Assembly (NCBI GenBank): GCA_900088475.1
Contig: FLMG01001584.1
Span: 41,010-105,009 of the forward strand
Direction: 5' to 3'
DNA length: 64,000 bases
From: Hyphochytrium catenoides
Taxonomy: Eukaryota; Protista; Hyphochytriomycota
In this document: in pieces, positions 1,355-61,024 of the stretch
How the letters are laid out: each line of letters starts with the position of its first letter
Numbering within the stretch: the stretch's first letter is position 1
Program-made: the position numbers and the translations under genes
The notes under the pieces: model-generated
Seen by the model: the letters and a program-made list of their open reading frames with translations, nothing else
What the model was told of the DNA's origin: nothing
Database searches by the model: none

Positions 1355-2999
1355 ATGGCATCCAGGTAATCTAATCCAGAATGTCCCTGTCACTTCCAAA
1401 ATTCTCGACTGACCGTTTTGATGGTGCTAGGTACGATCGGGCGATTACTATCTTCTCTCCTGATGGACACCTATTCCAGGTTGAATACGCTACAGAGGCT
1501 GTGAAGAAAGTGAGTCCCAGCCCCCACAGCCCAAGCCAATGGCTCCTGCTACTTTTTACTGATAACCGTAAACACAGGGTAACTGCCTCGTCGGTGTTAG
1601 AGGCAAGGATGCTGTCATATTGGGTGTGGAGAGGAAAGCCACTGCAAAGCTCCAGGTAAGACTTCATCTCTTCCTTCCTGAAAAGGCAAGACCTTCATCT
1701 TTTCAGAAGAGGAATAAGAGAGGAAGGAGGCGTTAGATCCTTGTGCCTGATATCCATTTGGCTAAAAGCTTTTTGGCTTAGGACCCTCGGACTATTCGGA
1801 AGCTTGTGAAGCTAGACGACCACATCACATTGGCTTTTGCAGGCCTTAATGCCGATGCCAGGGTACTAATCAACAAGGTGCATCTTGGCTGAAAGCGATC
1901 CGTTTGTCTACCTCTGGCTTCAGTCACACGGAAAAATGAAGTCTATCCTATACCTTTTGAGCTTTCGTTGGCGCCAATCTTAGTCCTACTTGACTCGTTC
2001 CTGNNNNNNNNNNNNNNNNNNNNNNNNNNNNNNNNNNNNNNNNNNNNNNNNNNNNNNNNNCGTGTGCCTTATTGACGGCGGCCTTATTTGGTGGCACCTT
2101 CAATCAATAGGCTCGCGTCGAGAGTCAGTCTTACCGGTTGACGGTGGAAGATGCTCCTTCAGTTGAATATATGGCAAGGTATATTGCCGGCACTCAACAG
2201 CGGTACACCCAGCAAGGTGGCGTGCGGCCATTTGGCATCACCACCTTCCTAGCTGGGTTCGATAATCAGAAACGACCACAACTGTACCAGACCGAACCAT
2301 CAGGAACTTACACCTCATGGAAGGTAAGCTGAATATTATGGGTGATGATGGTCCTGTGTAGAGGGTCCGTCACTATAAAGGAGTAGTTCAGGCGGATTAG
2401 TGTACATGTCTCAAGCACTAGTTTCTATACTGCGAAGTGGTTCGCTGTCAGTCTTCTAAAGAGCGAGAAATGATGTTTTAAAGCGCTTTGGTTAGGCTTC
2501 TGCTGCTGGCCGAAGTGAGAAGAACATCAGAGAGTTTCTCGAGAAGAACTACGTTGCCGATCTTGACGAGCAAGGTGCAATCAAACTAGCGATCCGTGCT
2601 CTACTAGAGGTAAGACATCTTAAACCGCGGCCCTACTGCGGACCCCTTGAGGCTAAATCAAGGGGTCGAAGAAACATACAAAGAGGCAGGAATCAAATGA
2701 TGTGGCAAGGATGGGATAGATAGAACAATAAGCCGGGACTGCCCTGCTCATCTGCTAACAAGTTATACCAGGTTGTGGAAGCAGGAGGCAAGAATATAGA
2801 GATTGCCATTATCCGTGCTGATGAGCATGTGGTAAGTAGAAGTCACATGCCACCTTCTTACTTACGGGTCCTAATTCCCACCCACCTCTTTTTCCTGGCC
2901 TTGTAGATTATGGAGGAGGAAAGAGTAGGGGAGATGTGCGCCACTATTGAGAAGGAGATGGAAGAAGCTAAGGCAAAAAAGGGTTCCGAGGACAAGTAA
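1355..2999 (+). CDS. PSMA7: 20S proteasome subunit alpha type-7 (alpha4), 8 exons
   Basis: Exons 1355-1365, 1431-1509, 1578-1655, 1782-1877, 2111-2323, 2496-2609, 2772-2831 and 2907-2999 all have GT-AG borders. They splice to [24 protein letters not shown]...[16 protein letters not shown]...[11 protein letters not shown]...[15 protein letters not shown], the alpha4 signature. Confidence 0.96.
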
Positions 3000-6300: not shown

Positions 6301-9300
6301 CTTGATTATTGCCCGCACAAGCATCAGGTAGGTGATCAGAGAAGCTTACTTCCTTACTCAGCACTGAATCTTGCAGTTGTTGATGGAAGCCCAGTGCAAG
6401 GGTAGAAAGGCAGTATACAAGGCATACAGTGTTACGATTCCTACATACCTTTATCGTCCCAACTCTTGTTGTCTCTCCAAGGTCAACTTCCCACCATGGG
6501 TCCACATCATTAAGTGCCGTCCGAGTCACCGAACCCTTTATGATATGGAATTTAGTCGTTAGGGACTATAATATTCTCTGAGAACGCAGGGGTCCCTCTT
6601 CTGTCTGTTGGCTGTCTAGGATCTTGATTCTCGCAAACATTTAGGGGTGAACTCGGGCTTACCTGAAGAAAAAAACCGCTTCGGTCTCCATCAATTGCTC
6701 TATTTGCGTCGGCTCCAAAGCCAAGGGAGGACTGGTAAGCTCCTCCTCGCCTAGCTATATTAACTCCTGGAAAGTCTTTGAAAGAGTAATCCCAGCCTTG
6801 GCCAGCGATGACACCTGACACCAGGCGGGACGGGCCAAGACTGCATATTGGGGGCCACAGCACGATATGGAAAGGGAGGAGTTGTCACCATCACCATGAA
6901 ACTCTGACCAGAGAAATGGAGAAATACTACTACGGGATCTGCTGAGCCGGTGATAAGGAATGTTAAGGGACAGAGGGAGCATACAACCCCATTCGATACG
7001 CAGAACAATGAACGGTCTAGTCCCTTAAGTGGAAGGAGTAACAAATTCGCAGAAGAATCCGCAGCACTACCTCGTTAGCCCATTGGGCTCCCCAAACATC
7101 CGCTGTCTTCCTTCCTGGTCATAAAGAACAGCCTCTCTCGCTTCATGGGAAAGAGCGAAAGAGAGGTTCCCAGCTTCCTCATGATAAAGTCCTCGAATCA
7201 GAACCTCCAGGTCAGCCACCATGTTCAGCCTACGGTTGAATGATGATGGTGATGAAGAGAACTGAAATGACGATATGACGCTTGACGACGAGGTTGTAGA
7301 CGGTAGAGTCAGGATCGCGTCAACTCCTGGGAAGGAATGTTGCTGGTACTTTCTCTTTATGCTTCCTCCGTTTAAAGCCAAAGAGGTTGGCGAGAAGTAA
7401 TTGATATCTGTCGCAAAAGAGGTCAGTTAGTACAAGCCGAGAGGGAGGAAGAACCATCAGAAGCGCTAGAGATTTTCCCAAGCGTGAAAGCCGTAGTGCT
7501 AGCTTTAACAGTTCTCACCGCCATAGGTTAAGATTTTCTCACCATCAACTTCGTCGGCGTGAGTAACGCTGTAGCGAAAGTAGACTCTTTGCCCGACTGT
7601 TCTCCAATAAGAGGCCTCAGTGGGCTGACCATCTCGGCGCGTCAAGAGGGTAAAAGTGGGAGACCCGGTAACAACAACCTCATGAGAGAACTCGACAGCC
7701 AGCTCGACGAGCTCCCCAGAGACATAGGTCCCATCCTGCACTGTTGGATAGAAGGTCGAGACAAAGGGTGCAGAGCTATCCAGCTTTATCGCCCGATACG
7801 AGGAGAGACAGCCTTTGTCCCCTCGATAAAGCGGGGAGGACGGAGCTGGTAATGTGATATTCTACGAAGATATGACGGAACGAGCAGCGAGAGTTAGGAA
7901 GCAGATTAGAAGTATACTATGAGGACAAGCTAATCCTTAAACATGCAGACGAATTTTGATGGGAGCTGTAAATGGGGCGTAAGCACTACTCACTGCCAGA
8001 GTATTTGGAAGAGTGGAGACTGCATATATTTTCCCATCGTTCAGGACTAGAGCGCTGCCTGCCATACATCTCGTTCCTGGCACCTCCCATGGCTTGCAAG
8101 ACCTTACGTAGTCCAGTCGTGAGGTGGAGTCCTCTACATTCGTTAGAGCAAGAGTCAATATTTCAATGGTCGTCTATCTAAACCACTTATTCCCACCTCT
8201 TTGGACTGTTAGCTCAAATCGAAGAATATTAGTTCCAGACCCGCTGACATAAATGGCCGGACGCGGAGCGGGTTGGGTATTCATCCATAACGCTGGCGGA
8301 TCAGGCCCCGACATTTGCAGAAGTACTGGAGAGTCAAATGTTATCTGCAGAGGTATCATTTGGCCCCAACCATATATCCCGCTAGGGAGGGGGGACGATA
8401 CAGAGGTAACTGACGGCGGCAATGTGCTAATTTTGATCCGTATCCGGGTCAAGCTGCCCATTGTATCCCCCGCGGGGAGGCGTAGGTCAACTAAATAGCC
8501 CAAGGCTTTCGTCCGAATCTCCCAAGGCACCACTTCTGCTAGTCTTCCACCCTCTACGGCCGGTTCAGCTTCAGGGATACTATAAATCAACGACCTTTGG
8601 TCCAGAACATCTAAAGGATTGGCCGCGTCGTTCTCTTGGACAATGTATTCGAACATCAGAGTTGCTGTGTTACTGCCGCCGACGTACGTTGCCTTCACTG
8701 GAGTCAAGTGCTGCGTCGGCCCAGACATTCCGGTGGAATCTCCAGCTAAGCAGCCAATGAGGTAAGGAGGGGCTTGAGTCGCATAGTACGCATAGCTTCG
8801 TCTTTCGTCTGTGTTCCCTTCAAAGGTGCCGTCACTAGATCTTTCTTCTTCCCGTCCATTACAATCGTCCAGTTGCGCAGCTGTGCGGTTGTTGTAGACT
8901 TTGGGCTGATAATATATCGGAAATCCATCCATAGCATATCCAATAAGAAGCCTGTCCTGCCCTTGGGAAGAAGATGAGCCATACGAGAGCGTGGCCAAGA
9001 GGCATGAAGAAAGCCTAGTGTAGTGATACCTTACAATGGAGAATGGAGGAGTTACTTGTTACTGCAACGTTTACATAGCGGTTGTCTCAACTATCTTTGC
9101 AATGTCAAAAACAGTAGGTAAAAACAACCAAACTTACATTCCGTTTGCATCCGGCGCCCCAGCGCAGCTATCCACGCTCAGGTATCCAGGGCCATTTGTG
9201 CTTGTAACATCATTATTGAACTCGTCCCGGTAGAACCTGATCGGCACTCCATCTAATCCAATACCTAGTGAAAAACGTTTAGGATTGCTCTTAAAAGCAG

Positions 9301-27693: not shown

Positions 27694-28334
27694 AGATGAG
27701 TTACTCCCATGCCTATCTTCCTCCTCCTCCTTTTATTGACCTCCTCTAGAGAGAGTATATCTTAGGACTTTCTAGTATTATCGAGATTCTAATAAGGGTC
27801 GCTGAAGGACAGTATTAACTGTCCAAGAACATCTGTACGGCCATTGACCAGAAATCTCTGCTAGGAAGAGAAAGATGTATAGATTACTTCTCTATATATA
27901 ATGGGAAGACTTCCCTGTTTAAAAAGGAGAGAAAGTGGTCCCCGTTAACTCTATCGTCCTTCCTCTTGTCGCTGGCCACGCAGAGCAGTCCAGCAATGCT
28001 TCTTCTGGAGATACTCCGTTTTATTATAGGAACAATGGCCTGACTTNNNNNNNNNNNNNNNNNNNNNNNNNNNNNNNNNNNNNNNNNNNNNNNNCAGGAC
28101 AGGGCAAGCAAGAGCCTTGTCGCAATTATTTTTTGGTCCCCGCTCGCTTCTAGCTGCGCGAAGTACACACCATTCCACCCGGCCATGTTCTCAGCTGAGC
28201 TAACTTTACTCCCTACCTCAACTCCGGTCAACCATGAGCACGTAAAGAAAGCCTATGGAGACTGTTGCTGTGACCTGGATGCAGTGGTTCTGTCACTCTC
28301 CTTTGCAACTATCATCCTCAATGCATTTCTCGAT

Positions 28335-30156
28335 CTAGTGGTGATGATGATGATGGCTATGGCCCGCGCCTCCACCTGTCTGCTTCTTGTGTGGTCTGCC
28401 ATCGTCTCCAATTTCGCCTCTTTCTCTCATCCGCTTTGAGGTGGCATTCGCAGCTTCACTGAATGCGTTAACGAAGGAGGAAGCATGGAATGACTCCTCT
28501 TCAACGCAGGAGTCACAGCAGGGAAACACGGCTGGCATCTCATGCACCTCTGGCACCAGCTCCAACGAGTTGGGATCTCCATTAGCGCGGTACCTAGTAC
28601 TCCTTTGCCTGTCACACTCTGTACAAATGCGATTGCACGTGCACTTTCCCTCGTGGTTGGTGTACCAGAATGGTAGCTCATTGGAAAAGTTTCTTCCATC
28701 GTTGGAGACACGGACGAGAGCGAGGCAAGACGCACCCAAGGGAAGAGGGAGGGGACACTTAGGCACCTCAAAATAGATAGCCGAGTTGGAAAAGAACTCC
28801 ACGTTTTTCGCTGTCGCCTCTACCCATTCTTGCTCATTATCCTTATCAGCAGGCAGCTGAGAGTCATCCTCTGGATAAACAACCATCTTGTCGTCAGTGC
28901 GTATGGTCTTTCGCACACGAAAGTACACCGCTAGGCGAGGGGTCTGTACAAAGGGCTTCCCAACCACATTGATCCTCTTCCCACCCTTGGCATCGTCAGC
29001 GGTAGATGAAAGCGTCCGTATCACCACCTGCTGAATGCGCTGCAACACCTTTTGGTGCGAAAAGGTGTAGAACGGATGGGAGATGACAGGCCTCACACGT
29101 GCAAGCGCACCACCTGTCCCTCCCCGTCCATCAACTAGTTGGAAGATCAAACAGAATTCTTGATGATTGTGCTTCGCCGACGCTTCGGTGATGTTCAGGT
29201 CGTTGAAGCAAGCGACTCCCGAAAGCTTCACAGGCGCAACCAGCGTGCCTCTCAAAATATTAGGAAAGGGCTTGCGTGAAGGTAGAGCGCTGGAAGGCGG
29301 AGAGGATGTAAAGAATTCCTTGTCCCCCTGTGCATATAGAATCTGCACCCTCACTGATAGACTCTCTTGCTCCTCGACAGAGAGACGCAGGCAATCGACG
29401 TTGTGCAACTTTACCACACACTGGAAGTTCCTGCTGTTGTCTCCTGCAGCTTTCGTGCGGATTTGCACTGGTGGCTGCGTCATAATCTCCAGGTAGGGAA
29501 ATCTCCCTCCCCCTCCTCCTCCTCCATCTACGCCAAACCTCTTCAATGTATGAAGAGATGACGAAGACAGAGGAGGAGGAGGAAGAGGAGGCAAAGGTGT
29601 GGAAGTGGGGCAAATAGACTGTCTCTCCTTTTGAGGGATAATGGTTCCATGAGAGTGTGACGTGCCCATAAGGGTATGCTGGTGGCCGTGGTAATGATGA
29701 TGTTCTTCTTCGTGTTGCTTTTGTCTCTGTCTCACCTCTTGATAGTCCAGCCTTTGATGGCGTTTCTTCTCTTTTCCTCCGTCATCATCGGGTCTGCTCT
29801 GCGACTTGACGGGTCCGTGGTTAACAAAGCTAAACTCTCCGCTGTCATTTCTGAGCTTGGTGGAAGAGGGAGTTGAGGACGAGAAAGTCGGCGAAGTAAA
29901 GACGCCCGGTGATGAAGAAAATATGTCCTTTTTCGGCTTTAGCAGCTCACCCTGCGAGGTANNNNNNNNNNNNNNNNNNNNNNNNNNNNNNNNNNNNNNN
30001 NNNNNNNNNNNNNNNNNNNNNNNNNNNNNNNNNNNNNNNNNNACCCACTATTGATGGCATAAAATCCTGTTCTTGGATGGAGAGAACTTCTTGTTCCTTG
30101 GCTGCACCAAGAAATTCGGCCAAGAAGGCCATGTTGAGGGGGTCATCCCCGTTCAT
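28335..30156 (-). CDS. Putative transcription factor: Rel-homology/velvet-like beta-sandwich + IPT/TIG domain, His-rich, apparently intronless
   Basis: The frame is open from the N gap (29961) to the stop at 28335. The likely ATG is at 30156 (MNGDDPLNMAF...), upstream of the gap. IPT motifs: GGKRINVVGKPF...AIYFEVP...VRVSNDGRNFSNELPFWY. Upstream domain: PYLEIMTQPP...FNDLNI...PVISHPF. Confidence 0.75.
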
Positions 30157-30459
30157 AGCTTCCAGAAGAGTAGAGAAAGAGAGGAAAAAGTAATCCTTAG
30201 CACTCCTATCGCTTGCAGTGGGCTGGGTCTGTGTCCTGTCTCTGGTCGTTGGTTCAAGAAGGAACAGAGTAAACTCTAAACTCTGCTGTGAATGCGCAGA
30301 GAATAGTCCCAGTAACACCCTTGCCAGTTGTTGACACTCCTCTTCGATAAAGGTACAAAAACGAGTTGCGGTGAGAAAGAGGAGGCAGATTGGAAGTTAA
30401 TCGCACCGTCTACTTCTCCTCGAACCGTCGGCCGAGAGACGTGGCCTCAAAACCTCCAA

Positions 30460-33311: not shown

Positions 33312-36097
<2,786 letters not shown>

Positions 36098-39629: not shown

Positions 39630-42600
39630 ATGGCGAAGCTCTTGCGGGCCGCCACGAGAGTGTCCAAGAAGCCTCACCACTACCAGTTTGAGGGTAAGTA
39701 GGCCATGCCACCTGGTCTCAAATGGAATATGAGGTTCTAACCTTGGACATTTATGGCAATTCTTTGTAGTCACTTTCGAATCCATCTCCTTATCGCACAA
39801 GTTCAGCGGGACCGATAAGGAGCTCATTGTTTCTCTGTCTCGGGGCAATAAATGCAAGAGCACCAAACCTGTACTCTGGGACAACGACACACTAAATTTG
39901 CAGCAAGCCCTGGGCTCCACGTGCACTTTGTACAGAGCGAAAAATGGAGATTTTGAGCCTAAGAAGTACACCATTGCGGTCATCGGGGTAAGATGTAATG
40001 GGCAATAGCACTTGCGTGAACACTACTTGGTGCTGCTTCTTCTCTTTCAACTCCTCATTCGCCCCCACGTTGCTCTTTGTCCTTCGCTTTGTTCCCCGGT
40101 TCCCTTGCTCTTCACTGTTTCATTAACTGTTGCTCAGTCGAATGGCACCGCATCGCATTGATCGCGTAGTCCTATCTGGTTCAACCGTCAATCTCACCAT
40201 CATCTCCAACAAAAAAGACTTACTATTGAATGGATCCATGTGCTATAGATGCCATCCAATAAATCGTTCTGTCTGTTCGAACTGGACTTGGCGACTTATG
40301 CCTCCGCGGAACTCAACACTATGACAATCAAACTGAACCCTATAAAATCCGAAGACAAGAAAGCAAGTCTAAAGGTACAAACGCTTCACGGGATGCATGA
40401 GCTAATGCTGCCAATTCAGTCTCAAACGCTGCTCTTGCTGCTCTTGTTTATAGGTCAAGCTTTTTATGAAGTGGATGCCCAACCACACAGGGCCAGGGTA
40501 AGGCTTTCCGCTTCTTGGCACCTAAGCATATAAACGATGTCTGATCAACGTTATATCTGCTGTTTCTTTCTCTCTGTCTCTGATATTTGCACGGAAGGAG
40601 CGAGGCTGGATCAAGTGTGGCGACAGGCCTTGGACTCCATCATGTATGATAGCTACAGCGGTGTAAAGTGTGATGATCTGCGCCTAATGTACCCTCCCAG
40701 CCCAATGATGAAGAGCAAGACTTATCTGGGTTCGACGATACTAGAGTTGATGACACCTGCGAAACTGCATCAGTTAGCTCAGTACACAGACAAAAGTCAG
40801 CAAGGTTTGGGCTCATGTCTAAGGTACCAAAGTTATGATAGAGCGGACTAGATGCAGCGGAAAACCTAACGCCAACCTCTGAACACTTTAGGGCCCAAAC
40901 ATGGAGCTAATGAAGGAGGTGAGAGAGGGTTATGGTAGAATAGAAGAGACACTTGTACTCAATTCATACGTTTCGTAGCTGGAGGAACAGAAAGCAGAGG
41001 TATTGAGACTCCGCCAAAGCATTCAGGAAGCGGAAGCAAAGCAGTCAGTTGTTGAAGAGCAATTAAGAGAACAAGGGACCAAGGTAGGTCCACTCCCCTT
41101 TAGTGGAACAGCATGGAGGGCTGACTCATGATTCTCTGAAAGCTCTCTTCTTTGCAAAACTCAAATGAATCGGAGAGGCAAGCATTTATCGCAAAGCTGC
41201 AAACGGAACAACAAAAGTATCTGGAGAGTGAAGTACAGCGTCTAGAGCTCGAGAAACAGGTTGGCTCCAACAAAAATTGTTCCCCAGCTGTAACCACTGC
41301 TTTAAGTTCTCCTATTCACAGCTTCGGACGGCAAAGGAAGGGGCGGAAAAGTCCCAGAAAGATTCAGATGATCAACGCCTCAAGCTTGAAGGGGAGATAT
41401 CTTTTCTTCAGAAAGCGCTCCAAGAGGCGACAGCGGTGAGGCAGCCGACAGCGGTACCCACCATTGCATCGAAGAATGTGAGGGACGAAGAGGCGAACAT
41501 GTCGCAACTGGAATCGCGCTTGGACGTCGCTGAGAAGAAGGTAGAAGAGTTGAAAGCCGCACTGCGGAAAGAGCAACTCCAGCGTACCGTGGAGAAGCAA
41601 GGCTTTCTGGAGAAGAAGGCAGAGCTCCAGGGTCAAGTTACCCGTCTAGAGGAAGCACTGGGGGGATGGCAGGTGAAAGCCGCAGAGTTGCAGGATCAAG
41701 TAGACCAGCAGAAGGGTCTTCTAGAGGAAGGGAACAGACGGACGAGGAATGTAGAGACCGAAAAGGATAAAGAGGAGCTCTCTAGAAAGGCTCGCGAGAA
41801 GGAAGGAAGTTACCAGGCAACCATTGCCACTATCAAGGCTGAAAAAGATAGCCTTGAGAAGCTACTAGACGAGGCCAGAGAGGCAATTCAGGGGATGACT
41901 TTGAGCCAAAAGCAGTTAAATGAGGAGAAAGAGAAAGCCGATGCACTTGTTCAGCAGTTGGAACAGGAAGTGGAGGTCTCGCAAACCAAGGTTACTGAGC
42001 TGGAAAATCTGCATTATAAGGAAAAGGCTGGGTTTGATCGTGAGCTCTCCAGTTTCAAAGAGGAATTGCTCTGTGCAGTGGCAGCCAGGGAGAAGGCGGA
42101 AAAAGTAGCTAAACAGGTCCAAGAAAGCTATGACAGAGACCTCGTCGCAGAGAAAGAAAGGGCAGCCTCCGAGCTCAGGCAACTCCAGCAAAAGATGGAG
42201 TCAGAAATGGTATGTACTCTTGTTTGAGCAGGGGTGGTTTGGCTTTGTCAGTTTGGGCCCGGAGCGGTGGAACTCTCGCCATGTCTTTCCTACAGACACT
42301 GTAAGACTGCAAAGCTAAATGTTGGTGTCCAGGCTGCAATCACAAAACTGGAAAAGGCTGTTCGCGAAAGAGAAGATGAGGTCAGCCTGCTCAAGGAAGA
42401 GCTAGAGAATCTAATTCAGCTCAAGGAGGACGAGGGGTTGAAGGCTGCGGCGGAAAAAGAAAGACTGGAAGAGGACCTTGACAAGGCCAAAGAGGTACTC
42501 AGAAAAGCTGTAGAGGATCTTGAAAGCGGGAAAGAGGAAGAGGAAATACTGACTGAAGATCTGAAGAGGCTAAGCGATGAGCTGGAAAGGCAGAGCAAAG

Positions 42601-57600: not shown

Positions 57601-60600
57601 GGTGCGTTACTTCTGACCATCATCGACCTCGTTCAGTATGCTTAGATCTCATTCGTCCTTAACATTGCTCATTGATAGGAGGTTCAGGAACGCTTGAAGG
57701 CTCTGCTTGGGAGTCGCATTAGTTTCCTCTGGCCAATTTTGATCGAGATCATACTCTTCCCTTCCGAGTTCTCGACGAAGAATGCCCTTTCACCTTCATC
57801 ATTCGCACATATGTGGAGTGCTTCCAAAATCTCGGCAGCTATTAGAGCCACAACGCCACTATCTCCACCGGCCGATCCAGAGTCTAGCTCTGGACCTGGG
57901 CGGGCCCCCACCTCAAAAGAAGGTATAAGAAAATCCTAGCAGTTTCACTTGCCTTTTTGAAACCCTAATCGTACAGAACCAACGGCTTTATCAACCTGGG
58001 TTTAAGGGAGATCTGAGGCATTTTGTCAAGGCGTTACCATATGTCTATGAATATTTTAATTCTTGAGAACTCACCTGATGCCGTCAATGACCATTAATTG
58101 TAGGCGGAGGTGAAAGAGATGCCCATGCCGGTCACACCCCTTCTGGTTATGATCCAGACGAGATCCTGGGCATCTTCGCTGCTGCTGTGTCAGCTATCAA
58201 AGTCCAACTTCTCTCGCCTTCTTTGACATCTAAGAGCCGTTGTAGGTTGCAGAAACTCATGGCGTGCTTGGGAACGAACGCTGTAGGCCTTGCCCAGGGC
58301 CTTGGGGACAACGAACGCGCCCTTCGCTTATGCATCCGAACTAAGGAGCACTTTGAAGAAGCGGGAATCGAGGAGCCGATCGCTGATTTGGAAAGTTTGC
58401 ATATTAATGTCATATTGCGAAAGGGAGGCCATGAGCTAGCCGATGAGAGAGTTAAGGCCGTCAATGAGACTTTGCGCGGCTCCTACCTTTCTTCCATCAG
58501 TTCCGGTCAACACGGTGGCACGGCCCCCCTCAGTGCACGAGGCCCAGGCCCTACTGGAGTGCTTGGCTCTTTGTATGCATACGCACGCTTTGTTTACAAC
58601 TCTACTGCCTACTTCTTGGGCGCCACAGGACGGGAGGTCGCCGAAAACGAAGCAAAAGACGTACTAGTAAGGTTCATGGACAGCGTATGGAGCGTGATTA
58701 GCTGTCAATCTGCAGAGGTAATCAGGGTCAATCGTCCTCGGGGGATTATGGACATTCCCGAGGCAAAAGAACAGACGGCGGACATAGACCCATTGGAGAG
58801 ATCGGAGCGGATCTTAAACTTTTGGCTCTCGGGTGTCTGTACAGCGGGTTCCAGTGCCCTTCCTTCTCACACACTTGAAGAAGACATCGTGGCTTTGCCT
58901 CTTTGCGTCTTTGTCTACCTCATGCTTTCTGCGACCATAGAAGCAAGTCACCGGGCCTGCCGAAAACTACTGAGCTCAGCTCAGTGTCGTCGACTTCCGC
59001 TGTATTTACACCGGCGCTTATGGATTGCCAGCCTGCGGTTGTTGGCTTTCAAGTTACGAATATATACAGATGAAATGCGGACCAAAAGAGAGGACTCAGA
59101 GGAAGAAGGTAACATAGACGGAAGGAAACGAGCACTGGAGAACACGTTGCATGAAGCCGTGGAGCTAGCGATGACGGAATGTTCGATCGTCACTAAGCTA
59201 AAAGCCAACCTCGTAGGCGTGGTACCTTCGGAAGGGGATCAAGTCTGGGAAGGCAATAAAGTAGGAAGGGTAAACGCAGAGAGTGAGCTACTGGTAGAGC
59301 TCCTACAAATACTTGATGAGGTCCCCAGTGACGCAGATAGCGACTTCATGCTGTCTCTGGCGAACATATACCTCAACGCCATGAAGTCTGACGGAAGAAG
59401 TATGATATACAAGCTCCTAACCAAAGACCCAGCCAGGTGTCCCAGCGTGGTCCTTGAAGCGGCGGGTAAGGGTCAACAGNNNNNNNNNNNNNNNNNNNNN
59501 NNNNNNNNNNNNNNNNNNNNNNNNNNNNNNNNNNNNNNNNNNGCCAATGCAGCTTTACTGACCCTATTCTTATGGCCAGAATGGGAGATTCAATTTGGGG
59601 ATAAGGCAAGAGCAAAACAGTTGCTCTGGAAGTTGTTGGAGCACAATGTCGTACATCCTCCAGCTTTGCAGCTTCTTCTTGCGCTGGAAGTTACCGCCCA
59701 GCCTCAGACTGTCGAGAACATGACCCAGAAGCTGCATGCTATTCTAACCCAATACACGTCTGCTTTGCAGAGGTTACCTTTATCATGGTCTCTCTGGAAG
59801 CTGGTAAGGTTATCAAAGGGGTGGGAAAAGCTCAGATGAAGCAACACAAAGTAGTATGCGTCCCAGTCCTTCGCATATAGCCAATCGTATGCTTTTCAGT
59901 CTAACCTGGAGTTTTTCTGAGGGTTGCTTGGTTCTCTCTCTCTCATACCGGCCTCTTTCTGATAAGCTTCTATAAGCTAATCTCATCTCCATTAGGGAGT
60001 TGATATTGAGACTCGGTATGGTGTCGGGGATATCAATCAGGCCCGAAACCTCGCAAGGTTGATAAATAGTCTTGGAGTCCGGCTCGGCATTCCTTCAGCA
60101 GGGTCGCCACCTCCAAATTGTCATCGTTTGAGCGATAAGGCTCTCGAACAGGGGTTTGACAAAAACCAGAGAAGCATTGGGCTAAGCTGTCGGGGACTGA
60201 CACGATTGTCGCTGGGTTGCCTCATCTCCTTACGAGAGATTGTCTCCCTAGACTTGTCCCGCAACTGCCTGACCGCATTTCCTCCTCAACTTCTCCATTA
60301 CTGTCCGAACTTGAGAGAACTAGATCTCTCACACAACGCTCTTCTCGAACTGCCGGAGACCGTGTTCGGGTCTCCTTCCATTGGGCCGATTGAAGGGGCA
60401 AACAAAGTTGGAGAAAATCAAGGGAGCCGACCATTGGAAGCTTTGATTCTGGCAAACAACAATATAGAGACTCTGCCACCATCGATCTCTAACTTGAAGA
60501 AACTCCGTAAGCTGGACCTAAGCTCCAACTACCTTGTCCAAGTTGGGACTGATCTCTGTTTACTCAAGGACTTAGAAAGCCTGGACTTGCGTTATAATCC

Positions 60601-61024
60601 ACTACGTAACTGCCCCAGTCCCGGCCAATTCTTTTCAATGCTCCCGTCTTTGGGAGCACTATGGGTACAAGCAGCACAATCCTCATCTCCTCTCACTCGT
60701 ACAACCGTCAACACTTTGGCTGAAAGAGGTAAAGGTCCAGCACTCATCGAGACAAAAGGGAAGGAGACGCGGATAGCGACAAAAGCAGGAGCCCCAGCAC
60801 CGTCTTCACTAATTGCAATGCCTTTGACGACAATGAAAGGAGATAGTTCCGCAGAGGGCAATCGAATGACTGCTGGTTCTGCTAAATCTGCGAAACTTGA
60901 CTCGATAGGAAGAAATTGCAGCGTATGCCTGACGAATGAGGACACGCAAGTCCTGAATGGCAAGCTGATGTGCTCTGCTTGTATCATACAACTGCTGACT
61001 GGAAAGGCGACGCGACCCGGCTAA
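52429..61024 (+). CDS. ZFC3H1: ZFC3H1/Red1-like protein (zf-C3H1 + helical repeats) with C-terminal LRR extension
   Basis: SPLLSLRAYRLHPHY...SLLSDTYGHRLDSQREICPFEVNGVCNDDECPYQH is the zf-C3H1 with its upstream motif. Helical region includes LWSLYLK, LERAVKSIPGSVSLW and ALQRLPLSWSLWK. The final exon 59996-61024 encodes LRRs. The start codon is approximate. Confidence 0.8.
54592..54641. repeat. (TC)n microsatellite, about 25 units, intronic
   Basis: Uninterrupted tc run. Confidence 0.97.

Follow-up and report, generated by a model that had tools for sequence, protein, structure and literature searches.

The stretch of DNA analyzed here (the window) comprises 64,000 nucleotides of the protist Hyphochytrium catenoides, positions 41,010 to 105,009 of contig FLMG01001584.1 in assembly GCA_900088475.1, and consists of intron-rich eukaryotic DNA with about 48% GC. 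On its minus strand, at 28335-29960, lies an open reading frame (ORF) of 541 codons and a stop which runs into an assembly gap, and in which a single exon encodes the folded part of a Rel-like gene. A preliminary description, made from the letters of the window alone, had proposed that positions 28660-29505 encode two domains laid out as in the Rel/NF-kB/NFAT transcription factors. This range does span both folded domains, and the motifs named in support (PYLEIMTQP, QIRTKAAGD, FNDLNI, PVISHPF, GGKRI, VYF, WVEA and AIYFEVP) are all found in the minus-strand ORF within it. The first of these domains is an N-terminal beta-sandwich, presumably DNA-binding (N-domain, 29031-29498), and the second an IPT/TIG domain of the Rel/NFAT dimerization type (28644-29030).

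Predicted fold of the two domains

An AlphaFold2 model, made with an alignment of the protist relatives described below, consists of two beta-sandwich domains, with a predicted local distance difference test score (pLDDT) of 83.8 and a predicted template modeling score (pTM) of 0.76. When this model was compared with the PDB by Foldseek, the top 38 matches were all chains of NF-kB p65, p50, p52, RelB, c-Rel or NFAT, aligned over the whole model with E from 9e-11 to 1e-8, and EBF1 came directly after them. The top 30 matches of the AFDB Swiss-Prot structure search were all NF-kB, Rel, Dorsal, Dif or NFAT (best E 2.6e-13), and in the ESM Atlas clusters of the Rel homology domain (RHD) lead for the whole model (TM 0.56 over 252 residues). 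Among AFDB fold clusters the first four, matching over both domains, were L8H608 (E 1.2e-23), A0A2P6N756 (7.1e-22), F4QF73 (4.1e-15) and Q55CU4 (3.9e-14), proteins which are unnamed or called 'IPT/TIG domain-containing' and which, by their accession series, we take to be amoebozoan; animal NF-kB comes next among these clusters. The Rel/NFAT-like two-domain architecture is thus borne out by the top matches of the predicted structure. At the level of sequence, the IPT domain in the family profile matches NFAT5 (E 0.0043), then NFAT1 and RelB, the Pfam domain RHD_dimer is matched by five of 50 relatives, and an IPT domain of this RHD_dimer type sits directly after the N-domain, as in a Rel homology region. 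At the level of predicted models, the two folds and their order are established.

Taken on its own the N-domain is less specific, and in an N-domain-only model (pLDDT 88.3) RHD-N is not singled out. A VIA comparison with 48,161 chains gave the highest scores to VosA (11.8), VeA (11.3), p52 (10.8), p65 (10.0) and the Dictyostelium STAT (9.7), followed by Runx1 (9.2), NFAT5 (9.1), RBPJ (8.5) and p53 (about 8); in its alignment, model residues 6-151 correspond to residues 19-186 of p65 with 24% identity. Foldseek ranks velvet and STAT domains before NF-kB, while the neighbors of the N-domain in the ESM Atlas are a ciliate family, STAT (TM 0.69), CBP60 (0.65 over 140 residues), DG1062_N (0.62) and velvet (0.61). 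By language-model features the nearest are a haptophyte family (0.90), DG1062_N (0.89, 180 shared) and CBP60 (0.86, 181 shared), with velvet, Runt and p53 well below. The nearest sequence neighbors of the N-domain are therefore CBP60 and DG1062_N and its nearest solved structures velvet and RHD-N, so that velvet and CBP60, which had been offered from the beginning as alternative relatives, are both in its immediate neighborhood. The predicted fold resembles that of RHD-N and of the DNA-binding domains of velvet, CBP60 and STAT, and puts the N-domain in the p53-like or s-type immunoglobulin class of such domains; in Pfam 38.1 it is probably the domain called DG1062_N (PF28397). As velvet, CBP60 and STAT domains are at least as close to it as RHD-N is, the protein is better described as Rel-like than as Rel. 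An insertion loop in this domain (EFFTSSPPSSALPSRKPF..., 29241-29333) is predicted with low confidence (pLDDT 52-60 over model residues 61-80), and is gapped and variable in length across the family.

The RelA strings cited in the preliminary description (PYVEIIEQP...RFRYKCEG, FQNLGI, PVLSHPI, GGDEI and VYF) occur without a mismatch in solved p65 chains, against which three stretches, residues 19-66, 97-140 and 173-228, were verified, and an IPT pattern GGEEL...VVF...WEG...AIVFKTPPY is present in the RelB alignment of the profile search. The first strand of the N-domain, PYLEIMTQP, has its counterpart in PYVEIIEQP of p65 and the last, PVISHPF, in PVLSHPI. Smith-Waterman alignment to p65 19-66 gave a score of 37, equalled or exceeded by 37 of 3000 shuffles, and to p65 173-228 a score of 39 (a local match to RLPPVLSHPIF), equalled or exceeded by 47 of 3000. 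For the FNDLNI/FQNLGI segment, pairwise alignment did not rise above shuffles, and neither did the scores of the family hidden Markov model (HMM) against the verified p65 fragments. A Pfam scan of the whole ORF found no match at E<10, hence no RHD, and by Pfam the protein is no member of the Rel family; a search of PDB sequences with the ORF matched only engineered His tags, to the natural His6 end of the protein. Sequence by itself would thus make the resemblance to RelA marginal, and it is the predicted structure, together with the profile match of the second domain to the IPT domains of NFAT5, NFAT1 and RelB, that lifts it above chance.

Just after the first strand lies a candidate recognition loop, QPPVQIRTKAAGDNSRNF (29424-29477), for which family alignments give the consensus QPPxEVRTRTPxExRxF; as xQPPxEVRTRTPxExRxF it is almost invariant in the family. 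When the family loop RTRTPxExR is set beside the verified p65 segment EQPKQRGMRFRYKCEGR, a hydrophobic residue and the R, R, E and R positions of RFRYKCEGR coincide; one residue fewer separates QP from the first Arg in the family than in p65. HMMER picks the same register (vRtrtpkekR with MRFRYKCEGR) at a score that is not significant. The p65 residues so aligned are presumably Arg33, Arg35 and Glu39, which we take to contact bases in NF-kB-DNA structures, and Arg41. The Hyphochytrium protein has IRTKAAGDNSRNF here, with the first Arg unchanged, Lys in place of the second, Asp in place of Glu, and an extra residue ahead of the last Arg. Tyr and Cys of the RxRYxCE loop of Rel are absent, both in this protein (IRTKAAGDNSR) and in the family (VRTRTPxExR). 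The statement that the loop is replaced by QIRTKAAGD missed that this is no plain replacement but a diverged copy of a family loop which keeps R, R, E and R.

Two further elements may contact DNA. A conserved strand with the EASxKH loop, FNDLNITEASAKH (29169-29207), in which S and H are nearly invariant, is a candidate second contact loop; its position relative to p65 FQNLGIQCVKKR is a putative one, the pairwise match being not significant. At 29031-29090, PVISHPFYTFSHQKVLQRIQ makes up the last N-domain strand together with the interdomain helix; the family consensus there is SxPFYAYSHxKVLxRRR, and our protein has QRIQ where the family has xRRR. Because conservative changes (Lys for R, Asp for E, and RIQ for RRR) affect three basic or acidic positions that the family conserves, the protein may have a different or weaker binding site than the other members, and the altered DNA specificity suggested earlier seems reasonable given the diverged loop and the QRIQ helix.

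The open frame and its surroundings

The gap at 29962-30042 (81 N) interrupts the 5' part of the gene and hides the start of the protein. Past the gap, the first ATG in frame is at 29669, but as the frame is open as far as the gap edge the true N-terminus lies further upstream, and a second open stretch with an ATG is found beyond the gap. An ORF listing made by the bacterial rule gave 28335-29735 on the minus strand, 466 amino acids, with a GTG start at 29735, which is an artefact of that rule since the same frame is open upstream to 29960. A possible splice donor AG/GTGAG at 29737 was also rejected, with the frame open further upstream and the one metatranscriptome contig that crosses the site (run X3, 29674-29901) colinear there. 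A contig from run X2 covers 30043-30239 and reaches 29 bases into the gap, and another assembly gap, at 28047-28094, flanks the gene on the other side.

The folded domains are preceded by a low-complexity region rich in Ser, Pro, His and Gly (29499-29960), which probably continues across the gap. They are followed by a C-terminal tail (28338-28643) which is predicted to be disordered (pLDDT <50 from model residue 292), contains a Cys-rich stretch (CTCNRICTEC...CCDSC) as well as basic patches, and ends in a natural His6. For the basic patches RQRSTRYR, KRMRER and HKKQ, no position was found that could be aligned to the nuclear localization signal at the end of the Rel dimerization domain. By its letters the Cys cluster CTCNRICTEC ... 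CCDSC could bind metal; it was not seen to be conserved in the family, nor was the terminal HSHHHHHH.

Four public runs of RNA type hold short contigs 95-100% identical to the locus, contigs which may nevertheless derive from DNA. Of 17 differences between these contigs and the window, 14 are synonymous third-position changes in the Rel-like frame, including all nine inside the folded domains, and in the upstream extension four of six are synonymous. This predominance of synonymous differences shows that the Rel-like gene is under purifying selection, and supports the longer gene model. In run X4 a variant 95-99% identical to the window (28870-29126 and 29785-29932) differs in frame almost only by synonymous changes, and is probably another strain or a sister species.

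Elsewhere in the window there are two genes split into many short exons, one for a PSMA7-like proteasome alpha subunit (1447-2900, plus strand) and one for an NADP isocitrate dehydrogenase with the motifs DGDEMTR and GTVFREP (33800-35950, minus strand). An ORF at 60059-61024 on the plus strand has leucine-rich repeats (LRR_8, E 3.7e-20), and one at 8174-8998 on the minus strand, inside the region of a giant gene with immunoglobulin (Ig) repeats, has a short match to the YHYH domain.

A family in protist genomes

Relatives were sought by an exhaustive phmmer search of 1.84 billion representatives with the core of the protein (window 28536-29513, minus strand) as query. At E<=1e-3 the search returned 84 cluster representatives, of which 56 also passed E<=1e-10; the best E was 1.4e-28 and identities were 31-42%. 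Many of the alignments span both domains (query residues 8-285), and the family HMM gives the query 242 bits. The named members are the dictyostelids Acytostelium, Polysphondylium violaceum, Synstelium, Tieghemostelium and Heterostelium (loci DLAC_06033, PPL_05494, CYY_000595 and two Acytostelium genes), the other Amoebozoa Ceratiomyxa, Clydonella and Cochliopodium, Diphylleia rotans (CRuMs) and the stramenopile Thraustochytrium sp. LLF1b; the rest come from two further NCBI assemblies and many metagenome contigs. In the databases they are labeled 'hypothetical' or 'IPT/TIG domain-containing', and the phmmer members are without precomputed Pfam domain. Most have 100-430 residues of low-complexity sequence in front of the domain. 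The earlier proposal of a little-described protist family of Rel-like factors is well served by these 84 representatives, the named ones being non-opisthokont protists, and literature searches (on DG1062, Rel homology outside opisthokonts, the fold relationship of CBP60, and CudA) found no description of it. The family is real and uncharacterized, and its members belong to several supergroups of eukaryotes.

When 59 members with both domains were placed in a maximum-likelihood tree, the Hyphochytrium protein formed an isolated branch outside the three main clades. Its closest AFDB clusters over both domains are the presumably amoebozoan 'IPT/TIG domain-containing' proteins. Left out of the tree were two long repeat proteins, of 1458 and 4503 amino acids, which match the family HMM repeatedly, one with 13 IPT-like stretches and the other with 29 short stretches. 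The public gene model of PPL_05494 in Heterostelium album is labeled an alpha-galactosidase, with glycosidase domains in Pfam, and looks fused or mis-merged, which may explain why the family has been overlooked there. No protein of Dictyostelium discoideum or D. purpureum was among the matches of the length-filtered search, the distant Q55CU4 being found by fold only; this may be due to loss or strong divergence in group 4, or may be an effect of the length filter.

Relation to known DNA-binding proteins

We consider it likely that the ORF encodes a sequence-specific DNA-binding transcription factor of an uncharacterized family with the layout of a Rel homology region: first a DNA-binding domain of s-type immunoglobulin fold, then, joined directly to it, an IPT domain of the Rel/NFAT dimerization type. 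By analogy with its structural relatives the protein is probably a dimeric factor. Two chains would pair through the IPT domain, and each N-domain would reach into the major groove of DNA with loops at one end of its sandwich. The sequence would be read by the EASxKH loop together with two basic elements, the conserved loop that comes after the first strand (R-T-K...D..R here) and the interdomain helix (KVLxRRR in the family).

Several observations weigh against this. The structures are predictions, and DNA binding, dimerization and nuclear location are all carried over from NF-kB, NFAT and velvet. No sequence method gives an above-threshold link between the N-domain and any DNA-binding family already known: RHD_DNA_bind (PF00554) was not found in any of 50 members at a limit as loose as E<10, Velvet (PF11754) matches nothing in the protein or the relatives scanned, the N-domain profile has no matches among PDB sequences, and Calmodulin_bind, the CBP60 domain, reaches on the N-domain 14.7 bits (E 0.034) against a gathering score of 25.5, over residues 39-123 and profile positions 38-127 of 147. 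The match of the family loop to p65, taken alone, is not statistically significant in HMMER when compared with shuffles. No family member was found to have been studied in any paper, and the gap hides an N-terminus in which a signal peptide may formally lie.

The layout itself is that of the Rel homology region (PF00554 and PF16179), with the same two domains in the same order and joined directly. The preliminary description went too far in taking RHD-N plus IPT as defining Rel/NFAT, since an Ig-fold DNA-binding domain followed by IPT occurs in CSL and EBF as well. An alternative, in our opinion an unlikely one, is that a domain of CBP60 or velvet type came to be combined with a generic IPT domain in an independent event, as in CSL, EBF and CAMTA, in which case the locus would be uninformative on the origin of NF-kB. 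Such a combinatorial origin would agree with the fact that Calmodulin_bind is the only Pfam family the N-domain touches (weak matches in six of 42 relatives, best E 0.024), with language-model neighbors that are the haptophyte family, DG1062_N and CBP60 and not RHD, and with the place of EBF1, another factor combining a DNA-binding domain with IPT, next after Rel/NFAT in Foldseek. It has to contend with the order of the domains, their direct junction and the position of the basic loop, which all match the Rel homology region.

Somewhat less probable still is that we are dealing with a true but highly diverged member of Rel/NF-kB/NFAT, sharing a specific ancestor with opisthokont Rel homology regions. 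In whole-chain comparisons of the predicted structure only Rel/NFAT come first, the IPT domain is closest to Rel/NFAT dimerization domains, the structural alignment to p65 begins exactly at PYLEIMTQP/PYVEIIEQP (model residue 6 being p65 residue 19), and the family loop keeps the R, R, E and R positions of RFRYKCEGR. Against this stand the absence of RHD_DNA_bind in the family, the N-domain, which alone ranks velvet, CBP60, DG1062_N and STAT at or above RHD-N, and the missing Tyr and Cys of RxRYxCE. Unlike in NF-kB, Pfam finds no ankyrin repeats in the ORF, and the protein's one Gly run stands before the N-domain, with no glycine-rich region downstream of the IPT domain. A Pfam survey of 180 species by Leger et al. 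2022 dated the origin of Rel/NF-kB to the stem of the opisthokonts (PMC8763368), whereas the named members of the present family are all non-opisthokont protists. That the protein is no transcription factor at all, but an Ig-domain protein of adhesion or scaffolding like many IPT/TIG proteins, we regard as very improbable, since in spite of a giant Ig-repeat gene in the same window and an undefined N-terminus, the invariant residues are basic ones in loops, each domain is present in one copy flanked by the His-, Ser- and Pro-rich low complexity typical of nuclear regulators, and no hydrophobic segment is found in the open frame 28335-29960.

Returning to the family as one of its own with a Rel-like layout, its likenesses to other DNA-binding proteins are partial. 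Fungal velvet proteins (VosA, VeA, VelB; PF11754), whose likeness to NF-kB has been described before (PMC3876986), lack an IPT domain and dimerize through the velvet domain itself, unlike the protein proposed here. CBP60/SARD1 proteins of plants (PF07887) resemble the N-domain in fold (TM 0.65 over 140 residues) and in language-model features (0.86), but have middle and C-terminal domains of their own and a calmodulin-binding site, and no IPT domain could be demonstrated in them here. CBP60g and SARD1 are described as plant-specific (PMC5993538), and our literature search found no paper linking CBP60 to Rel. DG1062_N clusters are among the nearest to the N-domain both by language-model features (0.89) and by fold (TM 0.62). 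The CudA and SpaA proteins of Dictyostelium, of which CudA was another candidate relative in the preliminary description, are nuclear regulators in Amoebozoa, a group which they share with the family, and their Cud core is predicted to be a STAT-like beta-sandwich; Cud proteins are reported only in Amoebozoa, while the family is found in Diphylleia and a thraustochytrid too. Identity with Cud was rejected indirectly, by comparison of loci: PPL_05494 is not among PPL_05090, PPL_08828, PPL_04431, PPL_00580 and PPL_01091, and the family is therefore not CudA/SpaA. In the dictyostelid transcription-factor census of Forbes et al. 2019 (PMC6873476), RHR/RHD, COE/EBF, CSL, CAMTA and Runt are listed as absent from Dictyostelia, and PPL_05494 was not found in the part of its tables that was searched.

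From these results we can conclude that a previously unrecognized family of probable transcription factors is added to protist genomes, and its distribution suggests that the two-domain design is older than animals and fungi. The orthologs carried by Heterostelium and Acytostelium offer dictyostelid systems for testing the family. It is conceivable, although we put the chances at somewhat below even, that this family, CBP60/SARD1, velvet and the Rel homology region all descend from one factor, with an s-type Ig domain and a dimerizing IPT domain, which predated the split of Amorphea, CRuMs and Diaphoretickes. If such a common ancestor existed, the Rel homology region of NF-kB would be an opisthokont specialization of a layout that is much older, and a DNA-binding ancestor would be common to immune regulators in animals, plants and fungi. 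Should this kinship be real, the design of NF-kB would be far older than thought and would be linked to the CBP60 immune regulators and to fungal velvet.
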